Source: Blepharisma stoltei ATCC 30299 (lineage: Eukaryota > Protista > Ciliophora). From it: a DNA stretch of 64,000 nucleotides. The number at the start of each line of letters is the position of its first letter. Position 1 is the first letter of the stretch. The notes under the pieces were generated by a model, which did not search any database, was not told the DNA's origin, and saw only the letters and a program-made list of their open reading frames with translations. Below are positions 1 to 40,892 of the stretch, piece after piece. The DNA is taken from contig CBFDEM010000062.1 of NCBI GenBank assembly GCA_965603825.1, forward strand, positions 62,001 to 126,000, read 5' to 3'. The position numbers were made by a program, and so were the translations under genes.

Positions 1-675
1 ATCATAGACATGAGATCCTAGTAATTTATTATTCGAAATTTTATTTATGAATTTCTAATCATACATAGAAATGAGAGAATTTGTGCTTAGTATAATAAGC
101 TCACAATGAAGGTTAATGCTTAATTAATTTTAATTTTAAATAAAATTTAATATATAAAGGCTCTTTCTGATTATGATTAGGCTCTAAGAAAATCAATATA
201 AATACAACTTTTACAAAATGCAGGTGATATTACAATTTCTAGTTTGTTTCTCAAGCCAAAAAGGATTTTCTTAAAATCCCAGAAGAAGGCGGCACATAAG
301 ATTTTTAAGTTTCATTCATAAAATTTTATTAATGATGATTTAGCAATAGAACTTGGCTTATGCAAGTATTATTTAATCTTTAAATCTGGATGCTATCAAA
401 ATTACTATGGAGAAATTAGAATTTGACTTTAGTCTATAATTTCCTATAGAGAAAGAAACTCTTAAATTTATTCCAAATTAATCCTTATAGGAAAAAATAT
501 TCAATAAAATTAAAAGTATCATATGAGTGGATATAATTTTTTTGAATCATAAATAAGTTAACTAAACTTTCTAGTTATTTTTAACCCCAGCTATAAAATG
601 TTAGGATTTATTTATTCATAAGAAAACTCCGAACCTAAATAACGGCGTTTGAATTAGTTTCGTAAATAAATTACA

Positions 676-1515
676 ATGGCTTTAACGCTGCTTATGAGTT
701 TTCTTGGGATAGCTGCATCCCAATCTTTCTCATACGATTACCATGGAGTTGAGTGGTCCAGCTATTGCGTCAATGGCCTAAGTCAATCTCCAATCAATAT
801 CACAAAGGCCTACGATGGCCTCGAGTTGCATGAAAACGACAATGACGCTAACTACGCTTATTTTAAACTAGACTGGAGTGAGCGCCACCTCAAGCCCACT
901 TACAATCCATTTGTAAACTTCGTCCTAAACTCAGATTTTGGTTTCTCAAACCTCACCAGTGCTGATGAAGTCCTTATAGACTCCTACCACATTCAAACTA
1001 TTAAGGTCCACTACCCATCTGAACATAGATTTAATAATGATGGGAGTGATATTTATGCCCTTACCAACCCTAACGAAATGGAAGTCCAATTCGAACACAA
1101 GAGCTTGACGACTGGCAACGTTATGATTTTGGCAATTATTTATGAGTGGGGAAGTTCTAATTTCTTTATCGAGTCACTTATTGATTCTTTTAACAATCCA
1201 AGTGGCGCTACTATTAGGATGCCAGAAGCAATTCCTGGGCCTAAATATTTGTGGAACTATTATAATTACACTGGGTCTTATACAGTGCCTAGCTGTGGAG
1301 AAGGTATCACTTGGGTAGTTAAAACTCATAAAGAAACAGCCAGCTTAGAACAATTAGACTTTTTCAGAGGAATTCTCATGGCGAATTATTCAGGAGGAAA
1401 TTACAGGTATGCCCAGCCTCTAAACAATAGGACAATTTACAAGTATTCTTCAGATTCAGGAGCAAGCGCAATATTCATGATTTTTGGAGGGTTGGTCCTT
1501 TCTTTCTTAGCTTAA
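676..1515 (+). CDS. Alpha-carbonic anhydrase-like protein, secreted/GPI-like, probably acatalytic
   Basis: QSPINI, PSEH, Y.GS.T.P.C.E.I.W and NYR..QPLN.R motifs; signal peptide and hydrophobic C-terminus; two of three Zn-His appear replaced (IKVH, EVQFEH). Confidence 0.85.
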   Translation: MALTLLMSFLGIAASQSFSYDYHGVEWSSYCVNGLSQSPINITKAYDGLELHENDNDANYAYFKLDWSERHLKPTYNPFVNFVLNSDFGFSNLTSADEVLIDSYHIQTIKVHYPSEHRFNNDGSDIYALTNPNEMEVQFEHKSLTTGNVMILAIIYEWGSSNFFIESLIDSFNNPSGATIRMPEAIPGPKYLWNYYNYTGSYTVPSCGEGITWVVKTHKETASLEQLDFFRGILMANYSGGNYRYAQPLNNRTIYKYSSDSGASAIFMIFGGLVLSFLA

Positions 1516-32113: not shown

Positions 32114-32630
32114 CATTAGTTTAAAGTCTTCGAGTTTTCATTAAAGTTCTCTTTTTATCAAGAGTATTTTAGGCTTTCCAATTTAGGCAGACGAAATTTC
32201 ATCTATATTATAAATCATTTTTAGAAGTATTTTGGATTCTAATGCATTTTAATACCGGTCATAAATAACTCATTTAGTCCAAATTATTTTATTAAAACAA
32301 TTAAGAACTAAGACATGCAGTAAACCTCCTTCGCCAATCTTGTATATTTAATAAAAAAATCTGTAGAAAGCTTCAGCTTTTCTAATAAATATGCTATGAA
32401 GCTAATATTTTAGATCTTTCATTCTTGATGCATAAATTTAACAGCTGTTTTTAAATAATTTCATCAGTTCAATTTTAAATTGCATTTGCGTTACAATTTA
32501 AATCTAACAAAAGCTTCAGATCTTTATAAAACCAATTATTTTCTAGAGTTTATAATCAAAATATTAAAAAAATAACTTTTTCGGCCAAAATTAAGCTATA
32601 TCTGTATCTAACCCATCATATTTATAAATA

Positions 32631-34319
32631 ATGTCCTTCTCCAAAAGAACCCGAATTTCTCGCCATATAACGCAAATTGAGCTGTTTATCAGCTGCCAAA
32701 ATCTAAAAGATCTTCATACCTTTGGGCATTCTAACCCTCTCGTTGAAGTCTACATAAAGCACAACCACCAAGAAGAATGAGTAAAACTGGGTCAAACTGA
32801 AATGATAGAGGCTACCCAAAATCCAGATTTTTTAACAAGCTTTAAAATGAGTTTTACCTTTGAAGAACAAGTGTTTTTACGATTTAAAGCTTATGACATC
32901 CATCATTCTCGTCATGGACAAGCAGAAATTCATTATAATGATTATATAGGAGAAATTGAATGCAATTTAGGCCAAATAGTAGGAAATGTCAACAAAGAAA
33001 TAAAAAGAAACATAAAAAATCATCAACATGATGAGTATAGAGGAAGTATTATGATAAGAGTAGAAGAAGTTAAAGAAAATAATGACAGGGTTTTTATTCA
33101 GTTTGAGTCAGAAAATTTGGAAAATGTTTCAAGCTTTTTTGGGCATTTGACACCTTTTTTCTATCTTGGGCAATATATGGATAACGGGGAAATCCAAAGA
33201 TTTTATATGTCTGAGGTCAGAACTGGAAATGGGACATGGAAAATTGTCAATAAAACTATCCATGAATACTGTAACGGCGATTTAAACAGAAATATTTTAC
33301 TAGAAGTCTATGATCACCACCGAGGAGGTGACCATAAATTAATAGGAGTCGCCCATTTTACATTACAAGGCATTTTATCAGGCCTTACCAGCGATTTAAA
33401 CTTACTAAATCCGCATGACAAAAGTAAGCATTCTCAAGGAAAATTTCTAATAGGCAACGTCAGAAGGGCCAAAATTCCAAGTTTTCTTGACTATTTATCA
33501 GGAGGGCTCGAAATTACTGTAAATTTTGCTATTGATTTTACAAGCTCAAATGGAGACCCTTCAAGCCCTGAATCTTTGCATTATCTCGACCCCCGCGGGC
33601 ACAATCACTATGAGTCCGCCATTTTTGCTATCTCAGAATTCCTATTAAATTACAATAACAGTAAATCAATCCCTGTATATGGCTTTGGTGCCGAAATAGA
33701 AGGGTCACTAAATCAATGTTTTCCCTTAACTTTTGACGCTGGAAATCCTACAGCAAATGGTGTAGAAGAACTTTTAAATTCTTATAGAAACGCTCTATAC
33801 CAAGTATCACTCAGTGGGCCGACATATTTTAGCCCTATTATAAGAGAAGTTGTAATAGAGGCTGAGAGGATCCATGAGTCCCAGCTGTGCCAAAGGTATG
33901 ATTTATTGGTCATTTTGACTGATGGGGATCCTAATGATATGCAAGATACAATTGATTGGATTGTAAGAGGATCGTATGCCCCTTTATCAATTGTTATTGT
34001 AGGGATTGGGAGTGATTATTTTGAAAATGTAGAGGTTCTAGGAGCAGATGATAAGCAGCCGCTAATAGATAGTGATGGGAGACAGGAGGAAAGAGATATA
34101 GTGGAGTTTATTCATTATAGAGAAGTTGACCATTCTCCTACAGCACTTTGTCAGGCAATTCTTAGTAAATTGCCTAATGAAATTGTAGCTTTCTTTCATA
34201 AGAGAGGAATATTTCCTAATGTCGAGAATAATAGTGCGAGAAATAAAGAGAAAAGCGAATCTCCTCAAGAAGCCCATCACCACCATCATAGAAATCATCA
34301 ATATAAAGTTGATAAATAA
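32631..34319 (+). CDS. Copine (C2-C2-vWA), 562 aa
   Basis: ATG 32631 via TGA=Trp; SFLDYL.GG, AIDFT.SNG.P..P.SLHY, LSGPT.F.P, ILTDG, PLSIVIVGIG. Confidence 0.93.
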
Positions 34320-34588: not shown

Positions 34589-37500
34589 TTAGCTTTTCGC
34601 AAATTCCAAATTATGCTCAATGATGCGCACAATAGAAGGTATAACAGCTTCTGCCAAATCAGTCATTTTATCTAAAGATATCATTTCCATATTTTCTCCA
34701 TACTCTTCTTTAAAAAGAGCTCCTGTTTTGTTTAAAATCTCGCTGAGTTTCACTAGTTTTACTATTGCTCCTTGAGATTTAATGCCTTTCAATAAAGACC
34801 TTCAATTATGTCCACAAGGACAGCCTTCAGGATATTTTGTATTTATATGAAAGTCTCTGCCTTGGGGACAATCATCTCCTATTATAAAGTAAATTTTAGA
34901 TGCTTCAGGTCTTCACTGGAGACGGTACGCATTATAAATCCCATCAATCATTGCTTCCCCTAATTCTGGGCCTCCTCCACTAGCTATAAGTCTATTTAAA
35001 AACTGAACTGAATCTTCTTGATCGAAATTATTCAGTTTTCCGGAAGGTGGATATATAGTTACTGGATTCATAGGATCAAGCCCACCACTTTCTCCATGAT
35101 CAGTATACCCAACAATTGCAAATTTTGTTGAAACGCTTCTTGACATGCGTTGGCTTATCACAGATTTAATAATTCTTTTGACTTCTGGAAATATATCGCT
35201 CATTGATCCAGTACGATCCAGCACAAAGCATATATCATAATCAAACGGCACATAATGGCGGCAGGGAAAATTATGATCTGCATACTTATCTGAAAAAGAA
35301 TGGTATATTTTGTTTTCACAATAAACTATGTCTTTATGCTCAGCGTTACCGCAAATTGCATTGCATTTACTGAATGATTGCTGAGCTTTAGGATTTTTAG
35401 CTTCTATTGGAGGCTGCCAATTATGGTGTTGCCAGTATGTACTGCATTCAAGAAGATCATATTCGACGTGCGTGTCTGGGTAGTATATGTCCTTTGAATG
35501 GACTGCTAAGCCATTCTTAGTTTTTTCATAGCATCTTTTACCTCCTGGACACTTTAAAGGATGTGAATGGCCTCTGCCTTTTCTTTGGCAGCTTATATCG
35601 CAGAATTCAGGATAAGCAATTTCTCCTGCTTTGAATTTTCTTGTGGCTTTTTGCGATGGTCCTTCGGTCAAATCTTCGTACTCAAAAGTCTCAGCTTTGG
35701 AGAGATAAATGCATTTTTCCTTATTTCTGTGAGTTGGAGTTGAATGCAAGCCTTCATGTCCAACCTCCTTATTGCAATAAGCATCACAGTCTGGGCATTT
35801 TTCTTGACATTTGTGTTTTTTGCAATCATGAGCTCCTGTATGAGAAGTTTTAAATTTAGGAATCGGAATTGCACAAGCACAAGTTTTGAAGCATTGAGAA
35901 GTATAAAGATAAGTGAATCTATTATACTCATTATCAAAAAATCTAGTGCTTTTTTTAATTTCAACTTCACAATTATTTCTTTCGCATTTTTTACCACATA
36001 CATGCTCATTATTGCAGATGTGAACTTGCTTGCGGGATTGGCCTTCTTGAGGGAATTCAATCTCTTTACCAACTTGATTTACAAATTTAATAAAAAATAA
36101 AATATATTTTATTAAGTTTGCTAAGATTAATTTTTACCACAAAAGATATTCTTTGATGGTATTTTTCTAGAATTTTCGGTAAGTGAATGAAAATGGTTTT
36201 TACTTGCACAAGTCATTCCACACTCTGGAAATTCACACCGAATTGGGCAGTTTTCCTGTCCACAATTGTGAGCTTATGAGGTTTTAAGCAATCTATCTCA
36301 CATTTTCTCCCACAATAAGCATACATCTCGCAATTTTTCCCGCATGGGTGCTTTAATTTCCCGCATTTGTGCTCTCCAAGATGATTACGGCTTTCTATAC
36401 ATTTTTCTTTACAAATCTCAAACAATCTGCATTTATGCATGCATGGATTTTTTTTCTCTTTGCATTTATGATCTCCGTTATGGCCAGCATCGTATGCACA
36501 AAGTTTTGAAATTTCCCATACTTTACAATCAAATGGGCATTTATGGTCAGTTGAGCAGTCACATTGACTTTTATGATTTAAATTCTTTATACAGAATCTT
36601 TCACATTGACTGCATTTTCTCCTGCATTTATAATGCTGACTTACTATTTTGTCGATATCTCTTTTTATTGCAACAATTTCGCTATTAGTGGATTGCATTA
36701 ATTCTGTTGACTGAGGCAGACTTTCATAAATATAATTTAACATTTCTTTTCTTCAGACATCGAAATAGCTTTTAATAAGTACGTCAATGCACGAATACCA
36801 GTCATTATGGTAAAACTTTCTCTCTTCCTTGGAAGTTATCTTCTTAAGAATTTTTATGAATGGTTTTAAAGGCTCTTTAGTATTAAGGGTAATTGAGTTT
36901 ATTCGGATGCAAATTTCTATCTCCCTGCCTAAAAATACTAATCTACAATCTAGCAGAACTTCTGATTTTAAGACGTGGTTTGAATTAGCTGGATCATTGA
37001 TTATTTCTTTAAAATGGTTTTTCAAAGCTTCAATTGAGATCTGAGATGCTCTTTCATCAACACTGGCACAGTCATCTGCATAAATTTGTGCAAGAACTAT
37101 CTTCATAGTCATTAGCAAATCTTTTCCAGACTTTCAGAGAATAGGTACATTTTGTATGTATTCTAGTTTACTATCCTCAACTACAGAATCAAATTTTTTG
37201 TTTTCATAATTATGGTAGCAAGAGAAGGTAAACCCTCAGCTGAATAATTTAAATAAAATATCAGCTTCACCTAAGCTTATCAAGTGACCTATATAACTTT
37301 GAAGCCCCTCTATTAGGATTTCTTTATCCTGATTTTCTCCTGCATCTCTAAGAGCTACTTCGAGTCTGCCTTTAAAGAGACTAGACCCTCTGAGCCTATC
37401 TATCCCAAGGGACAATTTATCAAAAAGGCATTCGAGATTTTTATCAAATTCCAAATCTTGATTCAAAATAGTAACATCAGCAATGGCTGATAAAAATAAG

Positions 37501-40500
37501 AAAAGCTTAATTTCTTCTTGAACTGTCCTTTCTGCTGAAAAAAAGCCTTCAGAATCAATAATGAGAAATAAGTTCCCACCGAGAGTGGCTAAAGATAGCC
37601 ATATGCCGTCAGTGCAACGGTGCGCGGCTACATCAAATCTTGTCCCAAAAATTCTATTAATCAGGTAGCTTTTTCCAGAGTTTTGCTTTCCTATAATTGT
37701 TATAACTCTCAGATTACTAGCTGAAGAGATCAGATTTTCTAAATGCCCCAATTTTATGTAATTTACGAAAGTCCCAATAAAACTGTTCCCGCTATCCAGC
37801 TCTTCAATTAAATTTTCAGTATTATTTAATCCATTTTGTAGAGGCATTAAATTTCCTTCTTGAATAGACGCCAAGTGCAGAGGCTGCCTTGTTAATATAA
37901 TTCAACTTAAATCCGTTTTTGAGATTTGCAGCCTGTTACTGATGCCTTCAAGTTTTTGATAATTCCCAGGATAAATCACCCCTTGATAACTTAATGACTC
38001 TTTTATAGTTGCTATAGATCTTATATATTGGTCTACTTCTAAGTTATTTTGATCATAGTAAATAAAAAAATCCTTTCTGCTATCCTCATTGTTGACTAAA
38101 TTAACTGTTTTCCCAAACTTCGCTAATGAATAATGGACAACATCAATAATTGGATATTCAGGGATATCTTTGGGCTTTGCAATCGCCTGACCTAACTCAA
38201 TGGACTTTCTTTCGCCTAAAATTTTATGCGCCTCAAATCTTACCTCTAAATCAAAAGTAATGACAGTATTAAACATTTTATTAGTAAGGCACTTAAAGCC
38301 AGCAGATATCGAGTTTATCCGAATTCTTTTCAAAAAATTAAAATTGATATCATAAAGTTCTATATCCATTTTCGTCTTTAATAAATATATAGTTTCGTCA
38401 TCTGAACATTTTATTTCTAGAAAACGCTCGCCAGATTGAGACTTGATGAAATCAACACTGTGGTTTGCTTGCATGACCTTAACAGGATGAAGCAATTTGT
38501 CATAGCTAAGCAGTTCCATGTAAAATAAACGCCCAACTTCGTTAAGTAAAAATACTCTAGGCGTTTTAGGTAAAATGCAAGCTGATACAACTTCTTTCAC
38601 ATGCATATACACTTTTAGTTCAGTTCCTTTAGTTATATATTTCTTCTGCTGAATAGCTCCAAAATATGCTTTTTTAATGCTATTTTGGAAGGCTACAAAT
38701 ATATTTGGGGTAGAACCTGAGGCAATAAGTAAATCGTTTTCCATCACAGATACCATGCTGATCTCGGAAGCATAATTTTGAGTAGGGTTAAATTGAACTA
38801 TCTGAGTTTGAAAGTTGTTGCTAAGTAAAAGATAAGCCATATCTTCAGAAAACGAAATAATTTCCATATTTATAAAATCTTCCTCAGCCATGTACTTATT
38901 TTCAATACCTGTGGACTCTATACATATTTCTGTTTCAGTCTGGATTATTTTTAAAGTTTCAAAACTATAAATATATTTCTTTTTCGAGTCAATTGAATTA
39001 TGAATAATTATTCTTGATTTAGTAAGTACATCATTTGTTAACCTTGTTGTAAGCTGTAGATATCAGGACTCAAGATCTTTATTTCAGTTGTTTATAAATT
39101 GAAGAGATATCTTTGAAGAGTCTTTTTTAGGATCAAAGCATTCTCTGATGCACTTTTTAAGCTCTTTTGATTTAGATTTAAGGCTTTTAAAATCAAATTT
39201 CTTTAATGCTTGATTGAGGTTTTTTAACTTCATATTAAACCTTGATAAAGAAGCCCTTTCTATTTTATATTTGCGTTTAAACTTGGAATTTAATTCATCC
39301 GCAAGCTGTTTGAATTTATTGTCAGCTATTTCTGTAATCATATCAAGGACTTCTCTATATAAATTTTTTATAGAAGCGCATACACCATCTGCATCATTTA
39401 AAGACCTCTCGCATGTATTTTTAAATGTCAAAAAGCAGCTTGCATCATCTATCGATTCTATAAAGGAATAGAGCCCATTGGATTCTATTGTATTACTTAT
39501 TATTTTGAACAATTTTTGAATTGCCTCATCAATTTTTTTCGTTTCAGTGTTTTTGTCTTGAAAAACTTTTTTTATTCTAAAAATGTGAAAATTTGTTAGG
39601 AAAATAGATGATTCGTCTCTATTATTTATTTTCTCAATAACTCTAACAACAGCGTCTTCTGTATCGGAAACCTCGACATTTTCTCCTTCAGGCTTGATAT
39701 TCACTCCTTCGCAAAGCTCTAAACTATGATTCTGCTCTCCTTCTATTTTTGGAGGATATCGGCTTCTCAATGCTTCCTGAGACGGGCAGCATATGACAGC
39801 CCCGCAAATATCAAAAAGTAGCCTTACAAAAATTAATTCTTTTGATTCTTGTGGATATGGCTTATTTATATAGATATTTGGATCTCTGCATTTAAAGTAT
39901 AAGCCCAACCTTCCCGAATCTTTATTGTAAAAGAAAACAATCCCCTCTTTAAGCGTTGAAATATCTTTATTGAGCCTACTTGCACTCAAATAGCTGCTGA
40001 GAAGCTCTAAACACTTATCCTCGCAGCCATAAACTCCAATAACTTCATTTTGCAAACTTAAGACATTTGCCAATTTTTCATAGCAACTGATATTTATTTG
40101 CCATTTATTAATAGTAAAATTTTGGATGTTATCAGCAATACTTTCAAATAATACTCCTTGTATAATATTTCGGTCATTACTGACATAGCATTCGAGGTTA
40201 TGTTCTTCGTAACTCTCGCTCACCTTGAGCAAGTCAAAATATTTGTTATCATCAATGCTTTCAGATGATACTTGGATAATATTTCGGTCATTACTGACAC
40301 AATGATTTCCTGGAATCCAGGGTTTGGGTTTATATAAAGAACCAATGATTTCATTGCTTAATGTTCCCCTGCCTGTATCACACTCAATTTTTTTTTCTTC
40401 GTAAGAATTTTCTTTCAGGCAACTGAGACATAGAATTGTTCTATTTTCTGAGACTCTGAACTTTTTCAAAGGACTCTTGCACCTGTCGCATAATATATAA

Positions 40501-40625
40501 GTCACATCATGATATGAATCGATGCTAACATGAATATCAGTGCATTTTAAACAAAGCCTTGTTTTATCGGCTTTGCACCAATAAATGCATGGATTCTCAC
40601 GGCACAGTGCACAAAAAAGTTCCAT
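34589..40625 (-). CDS. Giant B-box + GBP/atlastin-like GTPase + Cys/His repeats + vWA protein (~1990 aa)
   Basis: Seven ORFs join via TGA=Trp, removal of the 68 bp insert and one base added near 36274; GKQNSGKS, RCTDGIW, DSEG, LRD; DICFVLDRTGSM. Confidence 0.8.
36072..36139. mobile_element. IES-like insertion, 68 bp, TTTACCA direct repeats
   Basis: TTTACCA at 36065-36071 and 36133-36139; very AT-rich; excision gives FCGK|EIEFP in frame with the vWA ORF. Confidence 0.7.
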
Positions 40626-40661: not shown

Positions 40662-40892
40662 CACTATTTTTAATTCTTTCTACAATTTTTCTTATTAAAT
40701 TACTATTAAAATTTGAACAAAAAAGAAGATTGGATAATATCAACTATTTTTAATTCTTCTATAATTTTTACTATTAAATTGCCTGTAAAATTTGAACAAA
40801 GAGATTGGATAAATCCACTATTTTTAATTCTTTCTATAATTTTTATTATTTAATTGCTATTAAAATTTGAACAAAAAAGAAGATAGGATAAT
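40662..40892. repeat. Three tandem ~77 bp repeats upstream of the giant GTPase gene
   Basis: ACTATTTTTAATTC...AAAATTTGAACAAAA...GAT.GGATAA x3. Confidence 0.85.

Follow-up and report, generated by a model that had tools for sequence, protein, structure and literature searches.

GBP- and VLIG-type large GTPases are central to cell-autonomous immunity in animals, and GTP-dependent pairing and assembly is established for GBP, atlastin, and Sey1. To our knowledge, little has been learned about the history of GBP/VLIG-type GTPases outside animals. The gene described here, which is predicted to encode a giant protein with a GTPase of this group, lies in a 64,000-nucleotide (nt) stretch of DNA (the window) that comprises bases 62001 to 126000 of contig 62 of the ciliate Blepharisma stoltei ATCC 30299. 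It occupies positions 34589 to 40625 of the window, on the minus strand. Among the closest described systems, human GVIN1 is described as a pair of large-GTPase domains connected by a helical linker; it forms an antimicrobial coat on Burkholderia, and GTP-dependent pairing and assembly is predicted for it (bioRxiv 10.1101/2025.03.24.645074). The somatic genome of B. stoltei consists of 64 telomere-to-telomere contigs assembled from PacBio HiFi reads, has introns that are mostly 15 to 16 nt long, and uses UGA as a tryptophan codon (PMC9942806).

The locus probably represents a single heterotrich gene for a giant cytosolic protein of the GBP/RHD3/VLIG group, built on a core of GTPase, zinc module, and vWA domain, with a reading frame that is interrupted in the somatic copy. 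The genome searched amounted to 41.46 Mb in 64 contigs, and the window has a GC content of about 32%. Unless stated otherwise, positions are those of the window, features are on the minus strand, and residues are numbered according to the 1,512-amino-acid (aa) product annotated in the public record GCA_914767885.1.

Structure of the gene and interruptions of its frame

Comparison with relatives indicates that the apparent open reading frames (ORFs) are one ciliate gene for a predicted protein of ~1,990 residues whose frame is broken once in the assembly. The gene runs from an ATG at 40625 to a TAA at 34591-34589, about 1,985 codons. The Stentor coeruleus protein OMJ80154.1 (1,921 aa) was collinear with the locus over three reading frames in tblastn searches, with its residues 107 to 1388 matching 40133-36270, residues 1388 to 1437 matching 36273-36136, and residues 1432 to 1915 matching 36028-34598. 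Four further full-length relatives likewise gave a collinear alignment across the locus. A profile that covers 645 C-terminal positions of the family matched the locus in the same three frames, as profile positions 3-131, 129-180, and 170-644. Because collinear homologs and the family profile span all three frames, the single-gene reading is right. The initial annotation, made from the DNA alone, had joined seven ORFs into one gene; the collinearity with Stentor bears out the one gene, and the number seven is an artefact of reading with the standard code. The breaks between the ORFs differ in kind. Eight of them are sense codons, another is a true frameshift of 1 nt, and the remaining break is an insert of 65 to 68 nt.

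The public record splits the locus into genes of 1,512 aa, 138 aa, and 204 aa. The annotated 138-aa gene is in the wrong frame and has no homology. The annotation gives three genes because it follows the broken frame, and because of the 1-nt frameshift the ~1,990-aa protein is not obtainable by ordinary translation of the reference. Homology thus corrects the public annotation from three genes to one, and the exact interruption points of the somatic copy are now marked. Apart from inserted germline segments, GCA_914767885.1 is identical to the assembly used here, and the presence of the frameshift there is not independent evidence for it.

The eight in-frame UGA codons of the gene are, from the codon comparisons that follow, read as tryptophan and not as stops. 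The first is at 39084..39086, and the others start at 39065, 37904, 37238, 37136, 36755, 34915, and 34804. Between 40625 and 36216 every in-frame stop codon is TGA, with two further TGA codons in the last exon, and treating TGA as sense yields a 1,521-codon frame. Of 24 homologs, 18 have tryptophan opposite the TGA at 37136 (residue 1164). For the TGA at 34804, the counterpart in a paralog from the same genome is a TGG tryptophan codon, and most homologs that share a C-x-C-G motif also have tryptophan there. The gene has 8 TGA and 8 TGG codons; the other long ORFs of the window together have 13 and 67.

The frameshift lies at 36274..36275, where 2 nt separate a histidine codon (36278-36276) from an alanine codon (36273-36271). 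The family consensus at this site is C-x3-C-x7-H-x2-H-x-C-x4-C-x3-C, and the sequence HEVHDC of the Stentor ortholog aligns across the frameshift. Because of the 2-nt spacing relative to the family consensus, one base is missing within the zinc-binding motif H-x2-H-x-C. The sole GT..AG intron that would restore the frame here, 29 nt long, was rejected, as it would remove conserved C and H residues.

The AT-rich insert at 36069..36137 is 86% AT, compared with 66% for the gene, and the frame closes after the residues NIFCG. There was no family-profile match within 36047-36132. When frame-restoring excisions were enumerated, they included a 65-nt GT..AG segment (36137-36073) and longer GT..AG segments, the longest of 113 nt. 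Removal of a TA-bounded element of 68 nt (36136-36069) with GGTAAA repeats on its flanks also restored the frame. A tiny intron of 17 nt was disfavored, as it leaves a 49-residue hydrophobic loop where the loop of homologs has 3 to 34 residues; this range excludes the 17-nt option alone. Short germline-limited segments of Blepharisma are TA-bounded and range from ~65 bp, with length peaks such as 72 bp (PMC9942856). Either an intron or a germline segment that was retained could account for the insert, and a lesser possibility is a former germline-limited segment that is now removed as an intron.

Downstream of the interruptions, a 514-codon frame is still open and has ~40% identity to homologs. 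Because this frame is both open and conserved, any inactivation would have to be recent, unless the gap is erroneous or the cell bypasses it. The somatic copy would accordingly be either disabled very recently or dependent on correction.

The GTPase, zinc-module, and vWA core

The active large GTPase domain (residues 909-1130; 37236..37901) contains the motifs G1 GKQNSGKS, G2 RCT, G3 DSEG, and G4 RD that the initial annotation had pointed out, and their key residues were invariant across the family, in one set of 25 and one of 16 sequences. Its assignment within the large GTPases requires more care. In searches of Pfam with the 221-aa G-domain piece, the order was URGCP_GTPase (PF25683; 54.0 bits, cut-off 55), RHD3 (32.1 bits), and GBP (22.7 bits). 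URGCP_GTPase was the top family each time, scoring 52.3 bits in a genome scan and 48.8 bits on the 1,512-aa product. The match spans positions 176-287 of the 396 in the model, and 19 of 25 homologs matched the same family. The best solved relative of the G domain is Sey1 (5ca8; E=6e-7). The domain had been described as GB1/RHD3 type. Membership in the GBP/RHD3/VLIG group holds, but the best Pfam match, just under its cut-off, is to the URGCP/VLIG type and not to RHD3.

Orthology with RHD3 (PF05879) was rejected, since the scores of 31.7 to 32.1 bits cover positions 1-87 of 245 and lie below the cut-off of 42.4. True RHD3/Sey1 orthologs are encoded elsewhere in the genome, at C44:193776-194486 and C15:291967-292677, with 241.6 and 223.1 bits. 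The gene at C15 has two in-frame TGA codons. Because these two true orthologs lie on other contigs, the giant protein is not expected to be the enzyme of endoplasmic reticulum (ER) fusion, the housekeeping role that had initially been named as the alternative to an immune one. GBP (PF02263) was matched by the isolated piece only, at 22.7 bits vs 21.1 and over profile positions 11-112 of 264. It was not among the matches of the 1,512-aa product at E<=0.01, and the GBP C-terminal domain was found in none of 25 members. A conserved, putatively helical middle region (residues 1131-1324; 36654..37235), which contains the tryptophan-coding TGA at 37136, was matched in 42 fetched proteins with phmmer.

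The middle region is followed by a Cys/His zinc module that carries both interruptions. Its first part (residues 1325-1450; 36276..36653) matches profile positions 3-131 with 106 bits. The second part, 45 codons in the -1 frame (36138..36273), matches profile positions 129-180 and corresponds to Stentor residues 1388 to 1437. The third part lies at 35237..36064, and profile positions 170-644 match 36046-34595 with 469.6 bits. The module has 56 invariant C/H columns in an alignment of 44 sequences, so the Cys/His repeats noticed initially are real. The description of them as NF-X1-like is a different matter. The four regions searched had no Pfam match at E<=10, and there was no match to a PDB sequence. 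NF-X1 (PF01422) was rejected specifically, with no match in 25 members at E<=1e-3 or in the four regions at E<=10. In one ESM Atlas row the module aligned weakly with Basidiomycota vWA proteins (template modeling score, 0.31), and a feature search of the ESM Atlas with a 386-aa piece was uninformative.

The protein ends in a vWA domain (34592..35236), which contains the tryptophan-coding TGA codons at 34915 and 34804. The initial annotation had recognized this domain and its metal ion-dependent adhesion site (MIDAS), and both are upheld. The domain matches Pfam PF00092 with 26.0 bits, above the cut-off of 23.8, and the MIDAS motif D-R-T-G-S is present; D-x-T-G-S is part of the family consensus, with the serine nearly invariant. 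The family profile matches collagen VI and integrin I domains in the PDB. A model of the C-terminal part of the Stentor ortholog had a predicted local distance difference test score (pLDDT) of 90.6, and its vWA domain aligned with integrin beta-8, with beta I-like domains, and with vWA domains (VIA-align, Z 18.4; Foldseek, E=2.5e-8).

Contig 18 (655850-656623) encodes a stand-alone vWA protein of 257 aa, a close paralog of this domain that matches the family profile with 156.7 bits. Its N terminus is short, repeated, and rich in Pro, Ala, and Ser. No Cys/His or GTPase remnants were found upstream of it. The paralog could be a partner of the giant protein or a detached copy.

N-terminal half, family distribution, and surroundings of the gene

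Residues 1-908 were folded, with a mean pLDDT of 67. The protein opens with a putative CONSTANS-type B-box (residues 4-41; 40503..40616) of the pattern C-x2-C-x8-C-x7-C-x2-C-x3-H-x6-H. This finger matches CONSTANS (PDB 7vsq; E=6e-4), and the aligned ligands agree. Its score for Pfam zf-B_box (PF00643) was 19.5 bits (E=1e-3), under the cut-off of 24.1; the initial annotation had named B-box-like fingers at the N terminus. The B-box part of the fold model is of low confidence. A degenerate second B-box-like finger (residues 45-75; 40401..40493), identified from its sequence pattern C-x2-C-x16-C-x2-C, matches ANCHR-like_BBOX weakly (E=0.38). Two environmental proteins, with lengths of 1,994 and 2,044 aa, are the closest relatives. 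They also open with a B-box-like finger, which in one of the two scored 18.7 bits for zf-B_box against the same cut-off of 24.1. Such fingers do not occur in Stentor and the remaining homologs and are confined to the Blepharisma branch of the family. In the linker that follows, a duplication at ~40130-40315 (residues ~105-165) contains VSNDRNIIQ twice, ~45 residues apart, each copy with an ESI-x-DN motif six or seven residues on.

The next domain is an alpha/beta domain (residues 151-290; 39756..40175) with a pLDDT of 85 to 95 and a conserved G-x-Y-G in the place of the P-loop. In VIA-align comparisons, the model span 151..908 aligned with GBP2 (6vkj_A; Z 14.3, root mean square deviation 3.4, 203 residues aligned) and GBP1 (6k2d_A; Z 14.0). 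Going by the model, residues 151-290 probably form the N-terminal portion of a large-GTPase fold, GBP-like but devoid of a P-loop. There follow a long helical, coiled-coil-like segment (residues 358-553; 38967..39554), delineated by DSSP of the model at a pLDDT of ~60, a predicted beta-propeller (residues ~555-815; 38181..38963), and a predicted alpha/beta segment (residues 823-908). The propeller resembles WDR91, G-beta, and RACK1 (Foldseek, E ~3e-7) and, in VIA-align, Sec12 (Z 16.7) as well as numerous WD40/NHL propellers. A word-based search with a 513-aa N-terminal piece gave no matches.

A search with the 221-aa GTPase piece over 1.84 billion cluster representatives returned 1,448 matches at E<=1e-3, 50 of them at E<=1e-30. 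The order P-loop, Cys-rich window, and DxTGSM is common to nearly all long matches. Sequence comparison thus places the GTPase-zinc-vWA core in a large uncharacterized family spread across eukaryotes. Ciliate members occur in Stentor (two paralogs, 41% identical), Paramecium sonneborni, Tetrahymena malaccensis, and T. utriculariae. Animal members come from the rotifers Adineta and Rotaria and the acoel Convolutriloba, and fungal members come from Phlyctochytrium and Diversispora. Others are found in Anaeramoeba, the oomycete Lagenidium, and Dracoamoeba and, in the green lineage, in Mesostigma and the fern Ceratopteris. Members are named "hypothetical," "VLIG-type G domain-containing," or "VWFA domain-containing" or, wrongly, "sey1," and literature searches found no description of a GTPase-zinc-vWA family. 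When 185,579 genomes of bacteria and archaea were scanned with motif patterns, which required near-exact motifs, a single 3.9-kb contig of a metagenome-assembled genome was found. That contig, CALAYS010000231.1 (3931 nt, "uncultured bacterium"), has the start of the family's G domain at its extreme end (57% identity over 59 residues) and is probably misbinned eukaryotic DNA.

The G domain lies anywhere from residue ~60 to residue 2,180 among members, and the front ends of the family therefore vary. The propeller region was found in ~29 fetched proteins and the region before the propeller in ~10. The elements common to the family are the active G domain, the conserved middle region, the Cys/His module, and the MIDAS-containing vWA domain. 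In the subfamily of the giant protein, this core is preceded by the predicted GBP-like fold without a P-loop, the coiled coil, and the propeller, with the B-box added in the Blepharisma branch. In the B. stoltei genome the Cys/His module occurs once, and the GTPase has no close paralog. With a single module copy and a core strongly conserved across eukaryotic supergroups, the initial suggestion of a fast-evolving defense locus is not supported. The family of the locus is abundant, and its core is strictly conserved. Because tractable ciliates (Stentor, Paramecium, and Tetrahymena) carry members, the presumed target of assembly is directly testable.

A tandem array of three 75-nt repeat units (83% matches; 40663-40892) ends 38 nt upstream of the ATG of the gene. 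The 2.8 kb upstream of the gene contain small ORFs only, none of which match the family. The convergent neighbor on the plus strand (32628-34319) is a copine, with C2 and Copine/vWA domains according to the public annotation, and ends ~270 nt from the stop codon of the giant gene. GCA_914767885.1 has two germline-limited segments within the gene, at ~39527 (~113 nt) and at ~37656 (~136 nt), the latter immediately downstream of the codons for the P-loop. Outside the gene there are another three, at ~41075 (388 nt), ~41016 (326 nt), and ~34163 (323 nt).

Possible functions and relation to known systems

By analogy with GBPs, atlastins, and vWA domains, the giant protein may act as an assembling clamp. 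GTP binding would lead to pairing of G domains and then to higher-order assembly, the propeller and the B-box end would choose the place of assembly, and the zinc module and the metal-dependent vWA site would clamp a partner or a surface. A role in defense against intracellular invaders, proposed by analogy with GBP and GVIN1, is plausible in view of three features of the family, namely its VLIG-type G domain, front ends that vary, and a patchy distribution. Copy number and divergence in this genome give that role no support, and a conserved cell-biological role is about as likely as defense.

Several observations weigh against the description of the locus that we prefer. Exact-ORF look-ups with three pieces of the gene returned no independent contigs. 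The URGCP_GTPase score is just under its cut-off. The P-loop-less GBP-like fold is drawn from one structural alignment with a model of modest mean pLDDT, and an hhalign comparison of its alpha/beta domain with the active G domain was not significant (probability, 0.3%). The Stentor C-terminal model was fold-searched as a whole, and its matches were all on the vWA domain. Assembly and clamping are themselves carried over from GBPs, atlastins, and vWA domains.

An explanation that we regard as possible but do not favor is that the gene is intact in the cell, with the 1-nt gap an assembly error, a minority somatic variant, or a site bypassed in translation, the insert spliced as a long intron, and all ~1,990 residues made. 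The open and conserved 514-codon frame downstream, the GT..AG ends of the insert, which restore the frame at 65 nt and several longer lengths, and the lack of any other defect along ~6 kb are all as expected for an intact gene. However, the assembly was built from PacBio HiFi reads, and the gap is outside any long homopolymer, introns in Blepharisma are predominantly 15 to 16 nt (PMC9942806), and the RNA-guided public annotation, which lets the gene end in the shifted frame, contains no intron at this place. Furthermore, there is no slippery motif at the gap.

With respect to function, it is doubtful that the protein is the dedicated cell-autonomous immune effector proposed initially, which would form coats of the GBP/GVIN type on bacteria or viruses inside the cell. 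The VLIG/GBP-like G domain, the antimicrobial coat of human GVIN1 on Burkholderia (bioRxiv 10.1101/2025.03.24.645074), N-terminal regions that differ widely between members while the core is fixed, and a patchy taxonomic spread that includes phagotrophs and bdelloid rotifers would all suit such an effector, and the gene may have been dispensable in a 50-year laboratory culture. Yet there is a single copy in the genome with no expansion, the core is strongly conserved rather than diversifying, and human GVIN1 has neither the zinc module nor a vWA domain. A housekeeping machine for membrane or organelle remodeling, of early eukaryotic origin and with losses in many lineages, would fit the presence of the core in at least six supergroup-level lineages, with its 56 invariant C/H positions and invariant G motifs, and kinship with fusion GTPases such as Sey1 points the same way. 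We nevertheless think such a machine unlikely, given that ER fusion is already provided for by the two true RHD3 orthologs, neither a transmembrane nor a lipid-binding element was seen, the family is apparently absent from vertebrates and yeasts among the named matches, and the copy here appears broken without obvious harm to the culture. Less likely still is a scenario in which the GTPase-zinc-vWA core is an ancestral early-eukaryote defense GTPase of the VLIG/GBP type, a GTP-driven coat or clamp whose front end was swapped for different intracellular targets and of which animal GVIN/URGCP proteins are reduced descendants. In this gene the swapped front end would consist of the B-box, the propeller, and the P-loop-less G fold. 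The least probable proposal is that the Cys/His module binds nucleic acid in the manner of the NF-X1 fingers of ZNFX1, which would make the protein a GTP-gated sensor of RNA or DNA. The repeat unit, as read from the consensus, contains H-x-C-x3-C, whose resemblance to the NF-X1 finger core counts in favor of this proposal; the lack of any NF-X1 Pfam match in 25 members or at E<=10, and of any match to a PDB sequence, counts against it.

Among known systems, B-box proteins (CONSTANS/BBX and TRIM) are similar to the giant protein at its N-terminal finger, which aligns with the CONSTANS B-box; the giant protein has no RING, coiled-coil-SPRY, or CCT part. Like NFX1 and ZNFX1, it has repeated Cys/His units with H-x-C-x3-C, although their spacing and ligand pattern differ. 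RHD3/Sey1 and atlastin have a very similar P-loop region and an RD-type G4, but only 87 of 245 RHD3 positions are matched, and the giant protein has no transmembrane hairpin. GBP1, GBP2, and GBP5 belong to the same G-domain superfamily, and the G domains of GBP2 and GBP1 align with the N-terminal fold (Z ~14); however, the GBP C-terminal helical domain is not part of the giant protein, and the architectures differ. VLIG-type proteins (GVIN1/GVINP1 and URGCP; PF25683) provide the best Pfam family for the G domain and are also giant, and UniRef applies the name "VLIG-type G domain" to members of the family. Mammalian GVIN1 does not have the Cys/His module, the vWA domain, the propeller, or the B-box, and the interferon control of VLIG proteins is not applicable in a ciliate. 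In its two-domain layout, GVIN1 may resemble the arrangement in the B. stoltei protein, in which a predicted GBP-like fold without a P-loop is followed by an active G domain.

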